A DNA stretch of 56,955 nucleotides, filler included, from Platydemus manokwari (Eukaryota): assembly GCA_037951405.1 (NCBI GenBank). It is 5 parts of 5 records of this genome, joined end to end, with 100 filler letters (N's around TTAATTAATTAA, not from the genome) between each part and the next. Parts side by side here need not be neighbours in the genome. Positions count along the whole stretch, not along the records: positions 1 to 10,639 come from JBBMOY011117441.1; 4 more parts are not named here. One strand, given 5' to 3'. The translations under genes were made by a program, and so were the position numbers. The notes below the pieces were generated by a model. That model did not search any database, had not been told where the DNA came from, and worked only from the letters and a program-made list of their open reading frames with translations. The first letter of the stretch is position 1; every line of letters starts with the position of its first letter. This document shows, one piece after another, positions 1 through 10,639 of this stretch.

Positions 1-3000
1 TATAAATTCAATGTAAATGAAAGACCGCGAATTGTTGAGAAAATAAGATTGATAATCAATTTAGTTGAAACAAATCAGTTTGATAAAATTAATGAAGATT
101 TGGAAAAATTCATTACAAATATAGTACGCCGTTTAAAAAACATTTTCAAGAAGCCTCATGGTAAGAAGATTGATGATAAGAAACCTCAAGGTGAGAATAT
201 TGATGATAAGAAACCTCAAGGTGAGTCGATTGATAAAAAGAAACCTCAGGGTGAGACGATTGATGATAAAAAACCTCAAGGTGAGAATATTGATGGTAAG
301 GAACCTCAAGGTGAAACGATTGATGATAAGAAACCTCAGGGTGAGTCGATTGATAAAAAGAAACCTCAGGGTGAGAATATTGATAATAAAAAACCCCATG
401 ATGAGAAGTTTCATGATAAGAAGCTTAAACTGAAATATGATAGAAAAGTAAAATTTCTTACAATTATTCAATTCTTTAAAATAATCAATTGGGAAAAATT
501 TATCTATAAATTCAATGTAAATGAAAGACCGCGAATTGTTGAGAAAATAAGATTGATAATCAATTTAGTTGAAACAAATCAATTTGATAAAATTAAAGAA
601 GATTTGGAAAAATTCATTACAAATATTGTAGTCCGTTTTAAAATCATTTTAAAGAAACCTCACGGTAAGAAGATTGATGATAAGAAACCTCAGGGTCAGA
701 ATATTGATGATAAGAAACCTCAAGGTGAGACTATTGATGATAAGAAACCTCAATTTGAGAATATTGATGATAAGAAACCTCAAGGTGAATCGATTGATAA
801 AAAGAAACCTCAAGGTGAGACTATTGATGATAAGAAACCTCAAGGTGAGAATATTGATGATAAGAAACCTCAAGGTGAGACGATTGATGATATGAAACCT
901 CAAGGTGAGAATATTGATGATAAGAAATTTCAAGGAGAGAAAATTGTTGACAAGATACCTGAAGATGTGACGATTGATGATAAGAAACCCCCAGGTAAGA
1001 AAATTGATGATGAGAAGCTAAAAGTCATTTATGATAAAAATGTAAAATTTCTTACAATTATTCAATTCTTAAAAAAAATCAATTGGGAAAAATTTATTTA
1101 TAAGTTTAATCTAAATGAAAGACTGCGAATTATTGAGAAAATAAGATTGATAATTAATTTAGTTGAAAAGAATCAGCTTGATAATATTAATGTAGATTTG
1201 GAGAATTTTATAACAAGTATTGTTAACCAGTTTAAAAACATTTCTAATGCTTTTACAACAAGAGAAATAATAAATACAATTCATGTTTATTTACCAAGTA
1301 ATTGGAAAGATCTCCTTAGACGAATTCCTAGAATTGATCAAAATTTATGGATCGAGAGAATTAATTTTTTAGTATCAAAATTGAATGATACAAAAGCTGA
1401 GGTCAATGTCGATTATCTGAATGAATTGCAAAACATTATCGATTTGATTTATCAAGAAGATTTAAAATTTAAAAAAGAAAATAAGTTAAGTGTTCAATCT
1501 GTTAACGATTTCCGAGACAAATTAAGACAATTAAAAGAATGGAATTGGGAATCTCTTCAAATTTACATTGATGAGAAAATTCGTCAACAGATAATTAATG
1601 AGATTAAAAGATTTATGACTATTTCCGATAATAACAAGTTGGATGAACTAAATATTAAAACATACAATTGGTTTATACAAATATTTGGTATATTTTCCAA
1701 ATATAATGAAATTATTAAAAAAGGTTTCGTGTTTAATGCTCAGACTAAAGAATGGGAAAAGAAAATTGTAGAACCAGTTGGCGAAAATAAACCAAATAAA
1801 ACTGTTATTGACGAAAAAGTGAAAAATGACTTAATATCCCAAGTCAATCAATTGAAAAGTTGGAATTGGGAAACAATGTTGATATATGTGGATGAAAATA
1901 TGCGTAAGCAAACTAGAGATAATATTCAAAAGATAATCTCGATCATTGATAATAAACAATTTGATCAAATCGATAATCAATTTTTGAGTTGGTTTTTACA
2001 AATATTTGATATATTTGCCGAATATAATGAAAATGTTAAAAATGGTTTTGTTTTTAATGCTCAGACTAAAGAATGGGAAAAGAAAATTGTAATACAAGTT
2101 GGCGAAAATAAACCAAATAAAACTGTTATTGACGAAAAAGTGAAAAATGACTTAATTTTCAAAGTCAACCAATTGAAAAGTTGGAATTGGGAAACAATGT
2201 TGATATATGTGGATGAAAATATTCGTAAGCAAATTAGAGATAATATTCAAAAGATAATCTCGATCATTGATAATAAACAATTCGATCAAATCGATAGTCA
2301 ATATGTGAATAATTTTGTACAAATATTTGGTACATTTTCCAAATATAATGAAAATATTAAAAATGGTTTTGTGTTTAATGCTCAGACTAAAGTGTGGGAA
2401 AAGAAAATTGTAGGGCCAGTTGGCGAAAATAAACCCACTAAAACTGTTATTGACGAAAAAGTGAAAAACGACTTAATATCCCAAGTCAATCAATTGAAAA
2501 GTTGGAATTGGGAAACAATGTTGATATATGTGGATGAAAATATTCGTAACCAAATTAGAGATAATATTCAAAAGATGATCTCGATCGTTGATAATAAACA
2601 ATTCGATCAAATCGATAGTCAATTTGTGAGTTGGTTTTTACAAATATTTGGTATATTTTCCAAATATAATGAAAATATTAAAACTGGTTTCGTGTTTAAT
2701 GCTCAGACTAAAGTATGGGAAAAGAAAATTGGCAAGACTTTCCGAAAAAAAAGGAATATTTATGTAGAACGAAGAGAAAAGATAAATTCACATCACAGAG
2801 TGGGATCTGTCGAACACAATAAACACATTGGAATAAATAGTGGGAATTCAAAAGTCGGTGTAGGAAATACTGTGCATGAACAATTTCAAATTAAAAGTAA
2901 AAATATTATAAAAGATAGATATAAAGTTGGGGAAGATAGATCCAAAGTTATTCAGATGGTCAGTTCTCGTGGTCATGGAATAAAAATGGTTGGCGGGGTT

Positions 3001-3203
3001 CACTTTTATCCTTTAATTGGTCTCAATTTAAGGTAATTTTAATTTTTCACACTGACTTATTGATTTCAAAATTTAGGAAACATTCAAGCTTGAATCGTTT
3101 TCACTTCTGTACATATGTTCGAAAGGTCGACAGTGGATTCTTAACAAAATTCACCAATTGTGGAATTAGACAACAATTCATTTGCAAAAAACAATTGAAT
3201 TAA
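1..3203 (+). CDS. Split C-type lectin / giant helical-repeat protein, paralog A (5' part lies upstream of the window)
   Basis: Frame is open from position 1 to donor AG|GTAATT at 3032/3033. A 44-nt intron (3033-3076) leads to terminal exon 3077-3203 encoding KHSSLNRFHFCTYVRKVDSGFLTKFTNCGIRQQFICKKQLN*, which matches the C...C...FIC pattern of a CTLD C-terminal half. Homologous to the gene at 6653-10414. Confidence 0.85.
148..420 (+). repeat. 30-bp coding minisatellite (KKPQGENIDD)n, cluster 1, ~9 units
   Basis: Units of AAGAAACCTCAAGGTGAGAATATTGATGAT are visible directly. Confidence 0.95.
652..1017 (+). repeat. 30-bp coding minisatellite (KKPQGENIDD)n, cluster 2, ~12 units
   Basis: Same unit as cluster 1. 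Part of a larger duplication whose units start near 1, 505 and 1099. Confidence 0.95.
1666..2730 (+). repeat. 321-bp (107-aa) near-identical coding tandem repeat, ~3.3 units
   Basis: GCTCAGACTAAAG recurs at 1738, 2059, 2380 and 2701, an exact 321-bp period. Confidence 0.95.
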
Positions 3204-3669
3204 AAATATAAACCTAAATTACAATTTGTTTTTTGTCAATAGTTCAACATTTATTAAAGAATTGATATCAAAACATTAATCAATAACTTAATGCTTTCTC
3301 TCAAATTTGAGACCGCATTCAATTAAAATAATTTATAAATTTGTACATTTCTCCTCAAAATATTTCGTTTTAGGATAATCGAATTTAATTGTATTCTCTA
3401 TAGAAATTGTTTCGAGTTGCTTTGCAAATTTAAGATTGTAATTTGTGGTCGATATCTTTTCGTTTTAAAGATTTGTGTCTATTATTTTCGTCAAAAGTTT
3501 TCTTGAGTAGTTATTATGTTTTACACATTAAGTCCTTCGTGGATTAGAACTCGTAGCAAAGAGTTTGTTATCTTTTTATTTTATTTATTATATTTTTTTA
3601 GCTTATTATTTATACACTGTTCATGATTTCATGCCGTATTTATTTTACAAATTCTAATTTGTACAAGAT

Positions 3670-4020
3670 AATTTAGCCTAAGTTATGAAAAATGGCTCTA
3701 AAATAAAAAATTTAGTTTTAGGTGCATTATAAAAAATTTATAGTAATTAATTAATATAATTCTAAATTTTTGTTTAATTGTCAGAAAAAAATATCTGTGA
3801 AATCGAAAATTAGATAAAACAGAGCTTTAGTATTTTATTAACATGACTACTTGAAAAATCGTTCATAAATGTCAAATTTCAATAAATCGAAAATTAGAGA
3901 TGGAAACTAATTTTACAATTAGAATGAATTTGTGAGAATTTTACATTTATTTTACAAAAACAATTGATATTCGATTATTAAAACATGTCGGGTTTTGTTA
4001 GGACGTTATGTCATCTAATG
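3670..4020 (-). repeat. Diverged copy of an AT-rich dispersed repeat, reverse orientation relative to 34650-35010
   Basis: By-eye similarity to the reverse complement of 34650-35010 (CTAAAATAAAAA...CAGAGCTT...TTGAAAAA blocks in the same order). Confidence 0.55.
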
Positions 4021-4439
4021 TTTTATTGAATATCTTCCTAACTTTAGATATCTACATGGCATTATTAACCATTTAAAATTGTTTATCAACCCAGGAAATC
4101 GATTTATGTGCAACCACAATAATGAAGTACTTTTGAAATCCAGTTAGTTCATATAATTTTTCTCTAAATTTATAATTCTTTTTTAAAATTAATTTTGATA
4201 TGAAATTTTAAAAAATATTCCTGAAATTAAAATATTAAAATTAAGATGAAAATTTCATCAAAATGGAATTAGATTAAAGTGCCCATAATTTTTTGTTATA
4301 TTATTTATTTATGTTTTATTATGTTATTTTCTAAATACCCTTATTATATTATATTTTAATAAAATAACTTTTGCTTAATTTGTGTTTCAAAGTGGTTTGG
4401 AATTGCCGTCATCCATTGAATAGCTTTTGACTATAATGA

Positions 4440-5060
4440 CCTTGTTTAAAAGGGCAACCAAAAAGTTCCCACTGAAGATGCAAATTTTAAAAATGTGAGT
4501 AATTCACATTGTGCTGTCCCGCAATAGCGTTGAAATGAGTGTCTTCAGTACCAACTTTAATAAGAACAGTAGACAGATAATCCGTTGTTTTCATAACAAG
4601 CATGAATTAGGCATTTGTATTACTCTACTATAGATTATAATAGTGAATTTGATTTGATACTTGCAAGACGAAGTATCTCTTGAATTTCCCTCACAATTGC
4701 AAAACATCATAATAATTGGTAGAGTCAGGATTAAAGTTAGTAATTGATATGGATTGTGTTAGATCATTATATACAAAAAATTACTCTTCTAGGCCAAGTT
4801 CATTAATAACATTAAAAACATAAGAAATGTTAAAAAATTGTCGAAGTTGCATATGCCTAAAAACAAAATCAATATTTCAAGATTTGATTCATCATGACTA
4901 TATCCATTAGTAAGGTAGTTATTAGTATTCGGAATGATGTCCTTTCACTCAATGGAACCACCACAGCCCAACGATATTAAGGAATAAAATTTGGTGGAAA
5001 TCCAGTTTCCGTTTATTTTCATGGATATACTCTTGTTCGAAAGACTACGATTTGTGGACA
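4440..5060 (-). pseudogene. Decayed multi-exon gene, possibly F5/8 type C (discoidin)-like
   Basis: Partly splice-flanked peptides HMQLRQFFNISYVFNV, DYLSTVLIKVGTEDTHF and WELFGCPF. No continuous frame could be built. Confidence 0.25.
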
Positions 5061-6610
5061 GCTGAATGACATAAAAGCAAATCATTACTCCTCAATTAAC
5101 CTTATAGGCTGTTAGTGATAAATCAGATCATTAGAATCAAAATAAATTTTTAAAAAATTTGGAATCATTAAAGATTTGCCTTTATATTCCATGGTCCTGG
5201 AAAACACCTTTAATCGGGTCCAGCCAATAGTTAATTTATTTTATTCTTTCATAGACAAGCAGAACCCAACAGCAGTTATCAACATTTACTGGTAAAAACA
5301 GCTTAAATATTTGTTGATAAACTATAAAAGTATCATAGGGTATTTTGTATTTGTTTATGATTTCGGACATAATAATCGTATCAATGAAATTAAAATACAT
5401 CAATATCAAGATTAAATGATAATCGATAATTAAAAAATCAAATCATTAAAGTTTATAAAAATCGAATCAGTTTGGATGGGCCTTTGAGAACTAGTAACTC
5501 ATTCTCACAAATATCCTATAAATAGTTTTGTGCGTCTGTGTTTTTTAGGTGGCTTATACTTTACATGTGAAATTTCATGTTTTGTTTGGTCTCCTGGAAA
5601 GAATGCTTTGTATGTGTAAGTACGATATGTGAAGACAATGTCTATACTGGTACTCTTTAAACAAAATTTCTAATAAATGATGAAATCTTGATGTTACCCT
5701 GAAGAACATTATATTATTTATAAATATAAACACAACCACAGCACACAATCCTTATAAAGAGATTGAAATACATATTGAAATCCAACAGCCTAAATAATAA
5801 TAAAATATAAACACCAATATTTAGCTCACCATTAAAATAGTGATGATGAGACACTAATATTGCTGGGTTTTTATCTTTCATATCTGAATTTTGGAGCATT
5901 TTATCTACTTTGTAGTCTAGATTTCCACTAAAGTGTTCACAGCAATTAAGTAAGTTAAGTTAATATTGTTTGAAACTAAATCTAAAAACGTTATTTTGAA
6001 CTTTATTACATACGAAAAGGGGTAATTTTAACAAATATTATTAAATAATAAACTAATTAAAAAGCTACAAAGAAATTAGGTCACTAATGAATTGATAAAA
6101 CAAATGACGAGTATTTATGAAAATTAAATTAGTAAATTTATTAAACATGTTTTAATATTAAGTGGACTTTGTTGAATAACAGGGAAAATTGAAATTAAAA
6201 TGATGATAGAAAAATAAATATTTATACTTCACCTTAACAAGAAGACCAAGATTGCTTGAATCTGTATGATCGTGGTATACAATGTAAATCTCTTACGATT
6301 CCAGATCAAATTATATGACTCATTCCGCCCAAAAATAACAGAAAATGTGCAATAATCATTATGATTTCAATAATGTATCAAGATATAACAAAAAGTACTT
6401 CAACAAAAAATATATTAGGAAATTCTATTAGATTCATTCCATGTGGTTTATCAAAATCAATATCATAAAAAATTGAAAAAGGTAAATATGGTTCTTCTAT
6501 TTCAAAATGTTTAATTCTACAGCAACGGATTTAACGTGAGTATGAATTTCACAATTATATGATAATGGCTCTCAAGATAGGCATTTGCAAATCCATATGA
6601 TTCAAGAATT

Positions 6611-6618
6611 TATATAAA
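6611..6618 (+). promoter_or_regulatory. Candidate TATA box of split-lectin paralog B
   Basis: TATATAAA ~35 nt upstream of ATG 6653. The AT-rich background weakens the call. Confidence 0.4.
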
Positions 6619-6652
6619 TAATTGAGCAAACATCAAGGTGTAAAACTCAAAA

Positions 6653-9600
6653 ATGAAAAAGATTTTGTTAGCAATTAAATTGTTAATGCTCGTACATCTA
6701 TGTAAGATTTGCAGTTACTATGTCGATTTTGTTTTTCATTAATAAATTTGATTTTCAAAGGTACATCAATTTGCAGCGACGCGTTAGACGAAGAATTTGG
6801 TACAAAATTTGAAATTAACTATTTGTTATCTTTATTAATGGTTTTTTAGAACGATATTGTGTACAAAACGAAGCTTGTTACTTTGTTTCGAAATTTAAAA
6901 CGACTTATGAAGATGCACAATCGATATGTGAACAAAAGATTCACCAAAGCCCTGCACCACTTATTGAGAAAGACAAGGTTTTTTCAACCATAGACAAGAT
7001 TTTACAATAATAAATAATAATTGTAGATTGTTTTAGTAAACAAAACTAATAAGAATAGCTATTGGGTGGTCGATCCTGCTAAAGAACCAGGTGGAAGGTA
7101 AGATATATTTATTTTAATTTATGGAATCCAAATTCAGTAAATAAAACATTTTTACAGGAAAAATTACATTATTATTTGACTAAAAATAAATCAAAATTTC
7201 CTTTTAAAGATTCTAAAATTATTAAAAGGTTTACAATTTCGTACCAAAGAATATTTTCAGGCTAAATTTAATTGTCAATAAAAGAATTATACTAATGTAA
7301 ATTATTATCGATAACATGCTGAAATATTGTAGACATTTTGGATCAAGAAAGAAATTCAATATCAAATTGAAACCTTTCAAAAGACAGAAAATAACTACAG
7401 TAGGCCATATAAAAATTGCTAAATTCAAACATGCATTGTTGCGAATTCTGGAAAAATACTCCAAAATTCTAGAAGAATCAAAGTGGTTTGCTTTTCTTAA
7501 TTATTACGAAGAGAGTGATCAACCAGTTATAGAACACAGAATAAAAACATTTGTTAAATTAGTAAACAAGAAAGATTTTGACTATATCGATAGAGATACG
7601 GCTGAATTCATTACAGAAGCTGTGGCGAAATTAATAGAATACGAAACAAGATATCTCATTGATAATATGTATGATGTTAACAAAAAATTGTCACTATTCA
7701 AAAGATTTGTGAAATACATTTCATTACTGGAAGAAATAAATTGGGAAGAATTGGTTAAAATTTATGATGAATACAGGAGTGATGAAATAATAAAACGAAT
7801 GAAGATATTCATCGATTCCGTTAGAAATTTGCAATTAGAAAATTTAGATGAAAATTCAATTGAATTAGTAAGACATATTGTGAAACCAATATTAAAAATC
7901 AAAATAAGAATTCTTTTCGATCATGATCAAGATAAGGAAAGAGCCCAATCAATTATGGATACATCGAAAAAATATGTAAGCATATTAGAACATTTAAAAT
8001 GGAAAGAAATCGCAGAAAAAGTTGAAGAAAGTAAGAAAAAAGAAATAAAAGAGAAAATAACGACATTCATGGAATCAGTAAGACAAGGTAAAAAGGAAAA
8101 TATTAATATCGAATCAATAAATTCAATAAACGAAATAATAACGATATTAGAGACACTACAAATAAAGTTAATATACAGTTTGAAAAATAATAACAACATT
8201 TACAATGCAATAATAAACGCAAGTAAAAGTTTTATAGACATAATGCAAACATTAGATTGGAAAAATTTGATAAAATATTTCGAAGAAAAAGTTAGAGGAG
8301 ATATTGATAAAAAAATTAACACGATTATCAAATTGAGTAATGAAAATAAAGAAAGTAAAATAACTATAGATTTATTGAATAATATACATGAAATTGTCAC
8401 ACATTTCCAAAGGATTACAATCAGAGAAGCCTGTAATTGCGATACCTTTGAAAAAGCAGACGAAAATTACGAAAATCATATGTTAGTTGTACAATATTTG
8501 ATGAAAAATAAATGGAAGGAAATGGTTCAACACATACATATCAATAAAAGACATGAAGTCATAGAACAAATAAAATTATTTATAAAACTTGTGAGGGACA
8601 AAGAAATTAACAAAATAAATGGCAAAATGCAAAACGAAATCATAAAAATAGCAGAAAAATTAACTGAAATACAAATAAAACAGGACAAAAATAGAATATT
8701 CCGAAACATAATCACTTATTTTAAAGGATTGCAGTGGGAAAACCTTTTAAAATATTTCGATGCAAATCAAAGATCGGATATTACAGATAAAATAAAATCA
8801 GCTATCAATATTGTCACAAATAAGAATTATGGAGAAATAACGAGTGATTTATACAAATATATAGAAGGAATTTATCACAAATTCAAGCAATACGATATTG
8901 AACACGAAAAACCAAGCCATGTCACTGTCACTGATAAACATAGAGATTTTGTAAGTAGTGTTCGATTCTTACAAGGTGCTAAATGGGAAGGGCTTTTGAA
9001 ACATTTTGATGAAAAAGAAAGACCCGAGATCAGAGACAAAGTGAATTTAGCTATAAAACTCGTTCATAATAAGGAATACAATAAAATCGATGATAATTTA
9101 CACAAATTCATTCATACCGTCACTAAAAGATTTAAAAAATTTGATATCGATCTTTACAAACTAAGTGAAAAGAACATTTATGATATCACTGTAAAATTAA
9201 ATCAATTAATAAAATGGAAATGGAATAGTTTGATGATATATTGGCATGTTATTATCAGGTCAGAAATAGAAAAATATATTGAAAAATTTGTCAGTGCCGT
9301 TGATAAGAAACAATTTGATAATTTAGATTTAGAAAGTTTTAATAAATTTGTTCAAATTTTTGATACCTTTGCTAGAATAAAGAAATCTCTTGAACATGGA
9401 TATATTTTCAATTTTAAATCCGACACTTGGGAAAAGCCTAAATCACATATTTTAGACTCAGTAACTGGTAAATATGTTTTACCACCGACAGCCATAGCTG
9501 GTTTAATCGATAAAGTTACAAAATTATTAAAATATGATTGGAAGACTCTTATAGAGTATATTGATGAAAGCAATCGTAAACAAATTTCCGTAAAATTCTC

Positions 9601-10414
9601 TACAATTATTACACTCATTGAAACGAAGCAGTTTGACAAAATTACTGTTAAATATCTCAAATTTTTCGAACACACTTACAATACATTTGCACAGTTATAT
9701 CATCTAATCCAAAATGGATATGTTTATAATGTTCAATCTCAAGTTTGGGTAAGAAAAGTTCAAGTGAAATCAGTTCATATCGCTAAAACAGTTATTGATG
9801 TAAAAACAAAATCGGATCTAGTACAAAAAGTGAACCAACTAAAACAAATGAAATGGCAAACCATGTTGTCATTTGTCGACATAAATAGTCGTCAACAAAT
9901 TAGCGAACATGTTACTAAAACAATTACAACCGTTGAAAATGAACAATTTTCTCAAATCACTGTGGATCATTTTAATACTTTCTCGAGTGTTTTTAATACC
10001 TTTTCTAAAATGAATACGTTCTTGCAAAGTGGATACACGTTCAATACGGAATCTAGCGTATGGGAAAGTTCAGAAAGTTCGACAGTTGAAACTATTTCTC
10101 GTAAGAAAAGATCACTATTGTCCGAATTTCGTGAAAAAATAGCTAATAAAATATCGAGAGAATTTCATTTATTTCGTGAAACAAAGAATCGACTTGGTGA
10201 CATTCTTCGAAAACCTCTAAACTGGTTAAGCTCGAAGTATTTTTATTTTGATATATATTTACTTTTATGATACTATAATTCCCTTAGGAAACTTTCAATC
10301 TTTAATCCGTACCGATTATGCACTTACGTGAGAAAAAGCGGCAATGAATTCTTAACAAAATTCACAAATTGTGGAATAAAACAACAATTTATTTGCAAAA
10401 AGAAATTGAGTTAA
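6653..10414 (+). CDS. Secreted split C-type lectin-like protein with a 968-codon helical-repeat insert, paralog B (complete)
   Basis: Exons 6653-6701, 6761-6799, 6850-6977, 7027-7097, 7333-10236 and 10288-10414, all GT-AG and phase-compatible. Signal-peptide-like MKKILLAIKLLMLVHLCTSICS. CTLD N-half YCVQNEACYFVSKFKTTYEDAQSICEQ...SYWVV. C-half LCTYVRK...FTNCGIKQQFICKK*. Optional extra exon 7138-7228. Confidence 0.85.
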
Positions 10415-10639
10415 ATAAAACACTCTAAATTGCATTTTGATTGATATCTAATGCTTATATATTATACTTTTATGTCATTACTGAAAAGATATTTTATAAT
10501 GATTCTGAGGTTATAAAAAAATTATATTAAGGTTACATTTTTGTGCAAAAGGTTAATTTTTGGGCTAAGGTATAGACTACTCTGAACATTGTTTTATCAA
10601 ACTAATTTAATCTAAAAGTTGACCTACATATTATGAATA

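Follow-up and report, generated by a model that had tools for sequence, protein, structure and literature searches.

What kind of protein carries ten diverged copies of a tryptophan-anchored helical module, and what is the module itself? The question is raised by a window of 56,955 nucleotides (the whole stretch presented, five joined records) from Platydemus manokwari (GenBank assembly GCA_037951405.1), of which we analyzed positions 1-10639, contig C1117441 (JBBMOY011117441.1) of an assembly that totals 911 Mb and is split into about 2 million contigs. The G+C content along this region is 23-31%, and it contains two long frames, both on the + strand like the exons and units given below: frame A (49-3036), open to the left edge, and frame B (7316-10270), which opens with an ATG at 7316 and reads through 984 codons to a stop at 10270. 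They belong to two tandem paralogs, genes A and B. The stretch 7333-10100, in which a preliminary description had recognized the module, constitutes most of exon 5 of a predicted six-exon gene B (6653-10414, 1101 codons): its first base follows the splice acceptor of a giant exon, and its last is the first base of an RKKR motif. The explanation that we favor as probable is that gene B encodes a secreted protein with a split C-type-lectin-like domain (CTLD) and an inserted array of helical modules, opened by a proprotein convertase to act as a multivalent binder or scaffold.

Each of the ten four-residue anchors listed in the preliminary description occurs once in gene B, with the tryptophans at residues 57, 143, 229, 315, 400, 474, 557, 636, 742 and 847 of frame 7316-10270, 74-106 residues apart. 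Units were cut 14 residues before each tryptophan for alignment, and the ten aligned without gaps over 71 columns. Scored against the profile of the other nine, every unit reached 40-72 bits (E 1e-14 to 1e-24), compared with a maximum of 7-16 bits among 200 shuffles per unit. The giant exon begins with a basic lead-in (7333-7441, containing KFNIKLKPFKRQK), where an F-R/N-I-K-L-K-x-F/Y-K-R segment is found in five paralogs. The array then opens with unit 1 (ESKW, 7442-7654, 47.5 bits in the leave-one-out comparison) and continues with unit 2 (EINW, 7700-7912, 43.0 bits), unit 3 (HLKW, 7958-8170, 46.3 bits), unit 4 (TLDW, 8216-8428, 55.7 bits), unit 5 (KNKW, 8471-8683, 48.2 bits), unit 6 (GLQW, 8693-8905, 59.0 bits) and unit 7 (GAKW, 8942-9154, 71.9 bits). 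Three long units complete it, each followed by a hairpin motif: unit 8 (KWKW, 9179-9391, 39.9 bits; G-Y-I-F-N-x5-W at 9398-9430), unit 9 (KYDW, 9497-9709, 54.0 bits; motif at 9716-9748) and unit 10 (QMKW, 9812-10024, 61.2 bits; motif at 10031-10063). The period is 74-86 residues for short units and 105-107 for long ones. Pairwise identity among the ten is 14-39%, which indicates that the gene B array is old and diverged and not the product of recent tandem duplication.

The consensus of 87 family units (L10, W15, L18, Y21, D23-E24, R27, I30, K33-I34, F37-I38, V41, K44-Q-F46-x-K-I49) agrees with the one proposed earlier, except that Y and D/E, previously written as adjacent, have one residue between them. 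The G(Y/F)x(F/Y)Nx5W motif, reported for the last three or four units, indeed follows units 8-10 of gene B and the last four of gene A. The insert was also correctly described as almost free of cysteine: exon 5 of gene B has two, in a C-N-C after unit 4 (residues 373 and 375), and the gene A exon none. The array is basic (isoelectric point about 9.4) and rich in K, I, E, L and N. A separate observation concerns N-x-S/T sequons: gene B (7316-10267) has one where 7.8 are expected, a count as low in 0 of 300 shuffles. Family-wide the depletion is modest (56 observed, 99 expected), and paralog C1284761 shows no depletion; N-glycosylation of the helical modules may have been selected against, and the counts are not used as evidence here.

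Structure prediction gave a confident fold for the unit. AlphaFold2 modeled unit 7 singly, with an 87-row alignment, at a predicted local distance difference test (pLDDT) score of 90.8, with helices at residues 2-12, 15-21, 27-42 and 51-70. The pair formed by units 9-10, modeled with an alignment of 74 such pairs, reached a pLDDT of 93.2 and a predicted template-modeling score (pTM) of 0.52, and the four-helix pattern appeared in each unit. Over both models the helices span 2-12, 15-21, 24/27-42 and 51-70/72, two short and two long, and the anchor tryptophan opens the short second helix directly after a break. In units 9-10 the G-Y-x-F-N-x5-W motif is modeled as a beta hairpin (strands 75-78 and 83-86), and the 15 linker residues between the two units (87-101) are poorly defined, with a pLDDT of about 55. 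The preliminary description had pictured a string of three-helix bundles forming an extended rod. Its helical, tenfold repeated module stands, but the predicted unit has four helices and the long units add a hairpin. As for the rod, the low-confidence linker and the pTM of 0.52 favor beads on a string over a stiff structure, as far as the modeled long units are concerned.

Foldseek searches against the PDB returned nothing specific (E 1.9 or worse), and a fold search of a protein atlas found generic small bacterial helical proteins alone (best template-modeling score 0.72), which we treated as uninformative. From these unspecific results we take the module to be a small bundle of helices whose overall shape is common and for which no homolog was detected. 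SCIN and a chain of four protein A modules, the latter at a non-significant E = 2.1, appeared as weak fold matches. The earlier comparison with protein A and GA modules is therefore retained as an analogy of design only, namely tandem, small, Cys-free helical modules in an extracellular, multivalent arrangement. Protein A B-domains, GA modules and SCIN have 45-58 residues, three helices and a cell-wall anchor, whereas the gene B unit has 71 residues and four helices and lies in a eukaryotic protein within a host domain. The Pfam scans gave no match to the protein A B-domain or the GA module.

Sequence searches were similarly sparse. Pfam contained no significant family for gene A or B, and no unit of either gene reached any gathering score. 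Profile searches of all PDB sequences and a word-index search of 5.8 billion proteins gave no match, and a protein atlas search with gene B no usable one. An exhaustive HMMER profile search of 1.84 billion representatives matched three proteins: the UniParc fragments P0001 and P0002, and P0003, which is encoded on a 980-nt JGI metagenome contig. The 71-residue module is an undescribed small helical domain. Its description as unrecognized is thus borne out, both in that the units align to each other and in that neither a Pfam repeat nor a PDB entry, by sequence or fold, was matched.

The module might instead be a far-diverged form of a known helical repeat, that of spectrin, of the nematode polyprotein allergens (NPA) or of a DUF4042/HEAT-like family, which we consider improbable. 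A spectrin origin is suggested by the period of the long units (about 106 residues), the helical content and the conserved tryptophan near the unit start, which the spectrin repeat has in helix A. However, no spectrin match (PF00435) was obtained at E up to 1 for genes A and B or up to 0.1 for 74 two-unit segments, and the short units have a period of 74-86 residues. Gene B further differs from spectrin in the beta hairpin past the last helix, in predicted flexible linkers instead of a continuous helix, and in being extracellular. NPA proteins of the ABA-1 type (PF16469) share tandem helical units, a conserved tryptophan, secretion from an invertebrate and furin-type processing, and 2 of the 74 segments gave sub-threshold NPA matches (best E 0.0018). 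These matches were inconsistent across units, gene B units are half the size of an NPA unit, and furin sites, which lie between the units of polyprotein allergens, do not do so here, the gene B site being single and located after the array. Fold searches retrieved neither a spectrin nor an ABA-1 chain above noise. The commonest weak Pfam match, DUF4042 (PF13251, a helical region of HEATR6 type), was seen in 10 of the 74 segments and missing from 64, gene B gave no match to it at E up to 1, and the matches as a whole were scattered over 166 families. P0001 does score 46.3 bits on DUF4042 (cut-off 27), but this sum comes from three matched stretches in near-identical tandem units and is likely a false positive inflated by the repetition, an artefact of composition or helical content. 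Automatic annotation could nevertheless mislabel the family as DUF4042 through this score.

The array of new modules lies within a gene whose flanking exons encode the parts of a different domain. Exon 1 of gene B (6653-6701) provides the predicted start codon and a signal-peptide-like hydrophobic N-terminus (MKKILLAIKLLMLVHL); its DNA aligns with exon 1 of four paralogs and ends at a conserved GTAAGA donor. Exon 2 (6761-6799) encodes a short acidic segment (TSICSDALDEEF), with an AG acceptor and a GT donor kept in five paralogs and a consistent phase. Exon 3 (6850-6977) contributes the N-terminal part of a CTLD, with cysteines C0, C0' and C1, strands beta0/beta1 and helix alpha1, and exon 4 (7027-7097) strand beta2 and a WIGL-like Y-W-V-V-D motif, ending at the donor GGAAG/gtaaga; both are kept in four paralogs. 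The giant exon 5 (7333-10224, 964 codons) holds the entire repeat array between the acceptor ttgtag/A at 7332/7333 and the donor CTG/gttaag at 10224/10225. Exon 6 (10288-10414) provides the C-terminal CTLD part, with cysteines C2, C3 and C4, the ending F-I-C-K-K and the stop codon. All junctions are GT-AG, with introns of 59, 50, 49, 235 and 63 nt. The exons total 3306 nt with the stop in frame, and exon 5 is in phase with exons 4 and 6. The boundaries of exons 1-3 were fixed by aligning the 5'-terminal DNA of five genes, in which the junctions are conserved. The sequence ATG TAA at 6700-6705, considered as a start codon followed by a stop, was rejected, as the five-paralog alignment identifies it as the exon-1 donor (AT/GTAAGA).

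The same arrangement recurs outside gene B. N-terminal exons precede the array in four paralogs too, and the C-terminal exon was found 3' of seven family members, among them the gene of frame A and five paralogs. A spliced protein from another species, the database entry P0002, reads in the same order: last unit, RKRR, tail and C-terminal cysteine exon. P0002 is 48% identical to the gene on C1300139 of the present genome; it is an ortholog with a like spliced architecture.

Translation of the 5' flank of the array gives C-x5-C-Y-F-V-S, Y-E-D-A-Q-S-I-C and S-Y-W-V-V-D, and that of the 3' flank C-T-Y-V and C-G-I-K-Q-Q-F-I-C-K-K followed by a stop. The cysteine framework comprises C-x5-C-Y and A-Q-x-I-C in exon 3 and C-x16-C-x7-C, ending in F-I-C-K, in exon 6. 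All six cysteines of a long-form CTLD (C0, C0', C1-C4) are thereby present in canonical order and invariant in five N-terminal and eight C-terminal exon sequences; exon 6 also has invariant C, K, C, Q and F-I-C-K across seven family members. When the exon-3 profile was compared with the PDB, SP-D ranked first (E 0.022) and 10 of 12 rows were CTLDs, all matched at the alpha1 region, with a collectin and CLEC2D among the top. The exon-6 profile found Reg4 (E 0.0023), PLA2R and bitiscetin, at their C-termini.

As a further reference we used a profile of 18 canonical CTLDs from the same genome (138 columns). By hhalign, exon 3 was placed on columns 7-32 (P 4.8e-4), exon 4 weakly on columns 51-56 (P 0.051) and exon 6 on columns 97-124 (P 2.7e-3). 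Each match is marginal by itself, but the three placements are colinear and agree in order and position. Columns 57-96, the long loop that carries W-x-N-x-D-G and E-P-N in the CTLDs of this genome, have no counterpart, and the array occupies their place. In all likelihood, then, going by these alignments, about 960 residues of helical repeats replace the roughly 40-residue long-loop region that binds sugar and calcium. The array had been called an insert, and an insert it is, set between flanking exons for the two halves of a Cys-framed CTLD. Its extracellular location, likewise proposed earlier, is graded very probable from the signal-peptide exon, the CTLD cysteine framework and a conserved furin-type site.

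The motifs EPN/QPD and WND, which mark true C-type lectins and not the wider CTLD fold, are missing from gene B along with the long-loop region that would carry them. The closest CTLD relatives considered were compact forms with a short long loop (Link modules and the natural-killer-receptor-like group V) and planarian secreted lectins such as SCARF of Girardia tigrina. Gene B shares with CTLD proteins the canonical order of six framework cysteines and the alignment of the alpha1 region and of the C-terminal F-I-C-K to solved CTLDs; its family is predicted to be secreted, animal, and part of a large lineage-specific CTLD expansion. What sets it apart is the replacement of the long loop by helical repeats. 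Girardia tigrina SCARF are dual-CTLD proteins with sugar-binding residues (PMC514892); gene B, by contrast, has a split CTLD. A limited literature search found no description of such an architecture or of a CTLD with so large a loop insertion, an absence that is thereby unproven. Genome-wide, at least 148 Lectin_C matches were seen, many of them single-exon CTLDs of one subfamily (with the motifs G-R-L-A-L-D, T-D-L, E-R, W-L-N-x-D-G and E-P-N); by their sequences, they represent a large lineage-specific lectin expansion.

Several observations weigh against this account. Pfam PF00059 (Lectin_C) gave no row at E up to 10 for exons 3 and 6 of gene B, the last exon of gene A or P0002, searched as separate pieces, and the family contigs were absent from the 150 genome-wide CTLD candidates that were scored; the CTLD assignment consequently rests on marginal profile matches and the cysteine pattern. 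In exon 1 of gene B, a TTG occupies the position of the initiator ATG of four paralogs, and the predicted start hinges on an in-frame ATG at 6653, four codons 5' of the TTG, that restores a plausible signal peptide (MKKILLAIKLL). The entry P0002 could stem from gene prediction and not from a cDNA. Finally, mitochondrial DNA of several animals is present in the assembly, and the host of the contig is inferred.

A single putative processing site is a further conserved feature. Directly after the array, gene B encodes RKKR (10100-10111, residue 929), a furin- or proprotein-convertase-type site and the single R-x-K/R-R in the 984-residue frame, followed by a tail of about 38 residues (10112-10224) that leads to the C-terminal CTLD exon and has an equivalent in P0002. 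A furin-type R-x-K/R-R follows the last unit in six of the seven members with an available 3' end. It occurs exactly once each in genes A and B and in the genes on C426666 and C1689177, a few residues past the last hairpin; the C1300139 gene has it at the post-array position and at one other, and P0002 has its RKRR at the post-array position.

On a tentative model, which we hold with less confidence than the architecture itself, the two CTLD halves (about 119 residues without the loop) would fold together as a compact base, stapled by disulfides, in which the array is secured at either end. Because a ten-domain array is hard to fit as a closed loop, a proprotein convertase might cleave after the last module and free the C-terminal end of the array. 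The array would remain tethered at the N-terminal end, and the C1-C4 disulfide would retain the small C-terminal chain. Processing would thus yield a free tentacle, about 930 residues long, in which basic helical modules are joined by flexible linkers, possibly a multivalent extracellular binder, scaffold or matrix component. Its likeliest setting would be flatworm mucus or an adhesive or gland secretion.

The same site could be read differently, as that of a polyprotein or storage precursor in which the array is cut from the lectin frame, perhaps into single soluble carrier modules (for lipids, for example), and is not tethered. Nematode polyprotein allergens offer the analogy, and both the conserved R-x-K/R-R past the array and the basic, K-R-containing lead-in before it would suit excision. 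Yet the motif is confined to one copy per gene with none between units, the dibasic residues of the lead-in are not kept as a furin motif across paralogs, and no match to a lipid-binding family was obtained; we rate this precursor as improbable, on a par with a diverged known repeat.

Somewhat less probable still is a giant frame that forms a separate gene without introns, or a mobile insertion, in an intron of a CTLD gene whose lectin exons are spliced around it. The frame is open from the ATG at 7316 to the stop at 10270, and its flanks are not recognized as Lectin_C by Pfam, as such an arrangement would allow. Both splice sites of the frame, acceptor at 7333 and donor at 10224, are nevertheless in phase with the flanking exons, and at least seven paralogs, diverged to 36-46% identity, preserve the arrangement, as does the spliced P0002 of a second species. 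The residues next to the ATG at 7316 do not form a signal peptide and amount to just five codons before the acceptor, and Pfam scans revealed no transposase, reverse transcriptase or other mobile-element domain.

The split-CTLD protein encoded by gene B belongs to a family within the assembly. With the profile of the gene B units, 5-16 units were detected on other contigs (E down to 1e-26), where the open frames are long and reach 1476 codons, and a family profile built from 87 non-redundant units found at least 119 units on 14 contigs, with E values of 1e-15 to 1e-28 in independent paralogs. We estimate about ten genes in the genome, and not 14, as some contigs are pieces of one gene. Genes with a complete giant exon have from 10 to 16 or more units, from which we conclude that unit number turns over by tandem duplication. 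The last units of frame A reach 91% pairwise identity (Tandem Repeats Finder, 92% for a row of 321-nt copies), and these copies appear to be recently duplicated. The ratio of non-synonymous to synonymous substitution rates (dN/dS) was 0.33-0.68, both among internal copies of gene A and between two close paralogs, indicating relaxed purifying selection on the units. The idea that the array is decaying, non-functional sequence, regular through recent tandem duplication alone, could appeal to the near-identical copies of frame A and to the missing paralog start codon of gene B, but is very improbable given open frames of 700-1476 codons persisting in 27% G+C DNA on many contigs, gene B units that match the profile at 14-39% identity, dN/dS below 1 in every comparison, an ortholog at 48% identity in another species and a complete gene B model with an in-frame upstream ATG.

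A divergent unit type (L-P-S/G-N-W-x-E/D-L-L, I-D, L-W) is always located directly before the first long, hairpin-bearing unit and scores poorly with the main profile. It was seen in frame A, at a further family locus and in P0001 and P0002; its position and poor score suggest that the units fall into three or more subtypes whose order is fixed, namely short, LPSNW and long.

Gene A supports the same layout at the other end of the contig. Its giant exon (1-3032) is truncated by the left edge and contains one cut unit (4-150), six canonical full units (448-657, 1042-1251, 1504-1716, 1825-2037, 2146-2358 and 2467-2679) and the divergent LPSNW unit (about 1255-1500, frame A residues 419-500), in line with the earlier count of at least seven units plus a partial one. 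An RKKR (2743-2754) follows the array, and the last exon (3077-3203), with the C-terminal CTLD part and the stop, lies past a 44-nt intron with the donor AAG/gtaatt at 3032/3033; the splice phase of this last junction is identical to that of gene B. Frame A also contains two arrays of a 30-nt repeat between its helical units, at 148-422 and 652-1016 (9 and 12 copies, 82-83% matches), which encode the decapeptide K-K-P-Q-G-E-x-I-D-D. These arrays, probably disordered charged spacers, are present also in the paralog on C1153827, and gene B is without them. Between A and B, a gap of 4.3 kb has no frame of 80 codons, and in the 3.6 kb at 3037-6650, where neither strand has a frame of 80 codons or more, only short AT-rich tandem repeats (3569-3614, 4152-4191 and 4290-4329) were recognized.

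To which animal the family belongs has to be considered in light of the mixed assembly. It contains at least five distinct mitochondrial COX1 genes, from which the sample seems to hold several animals (perhaps prey, gut content or contaminants), and the assembly label should not be taken to identify the organism of the contig. COX1 on C1440324, C1562679 and C1815902 uses AAA at invariant asparagines (G-G-F-G-N-W, D-R-x-F-N-T), the flatworm/echinoderm mitochondrial code, and carries a T-S-H-G-L-I-M-I-F-F-F motif that we take to be flatworm-like. The copies on C1514745, C1389203, C1344449 and C43481 are presumably gastropod- or arthropod-like. A bacterial origin was rejected on account of the 4.3 kb devoid of ORFs, the 27% G+C and the assembly size of 911 Mb, which point to a eukaryote. 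The gene adjoining one family member on its contig is an animal MFSD4-like transporter, and an MFS-transporter exon on a paralog contig matched database proteins at no more than 54-57% identity. An arthropod host, at first suggested by some COX1 copies, was rejected, since the R&R cuticle-protein domain had one match in the 911 Mb. A very AT-rich genome of about 0.9 Gb with introns of 44-63 nt (and one of 235 nt) suits a triclad planarian, which we consider the likely host. The genome is thus probably that of a free-living flatworm, and the gene family is probably restricted to free-living flatworms.

Lectin-like proteins, with expansions specific to lineages, have been reported from the mucus of planarians (bioRxiv 10.1101/2025.01.09.632098). 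A bolder proposal, which we regard as speculative and rather unlikely in its full form, is that the lectin fold was remodeled, as a flatworm invention, into a clasp stapled by disulfides and holding a giant loop of a new helical domain that a convertase opens, that the basic, multivalent protein is a major structural part of a flatworm-specific secretion (rhabdites/mucus or marginal adhesive glands), and that it would be the first CTLD to scaffold a loop insertion of about 1000 residues.

If the present account is true, the module would be a new, confidently foldable domain family with almost no database relatives, and gene B an unusual way of building a large extracellular protein, by placing a tandem array in the ligand-binding loop of a CTLD and opening it with a convertase. 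The shifts in unit number by recent tandem duplication would make the family a clean case for studying how repeats turn over in secreted proteins. Should the host prove to be a planarian, these genes would be a candidate for the unidentified protein matrix of its mucus, rhabdites or adhesive glands.

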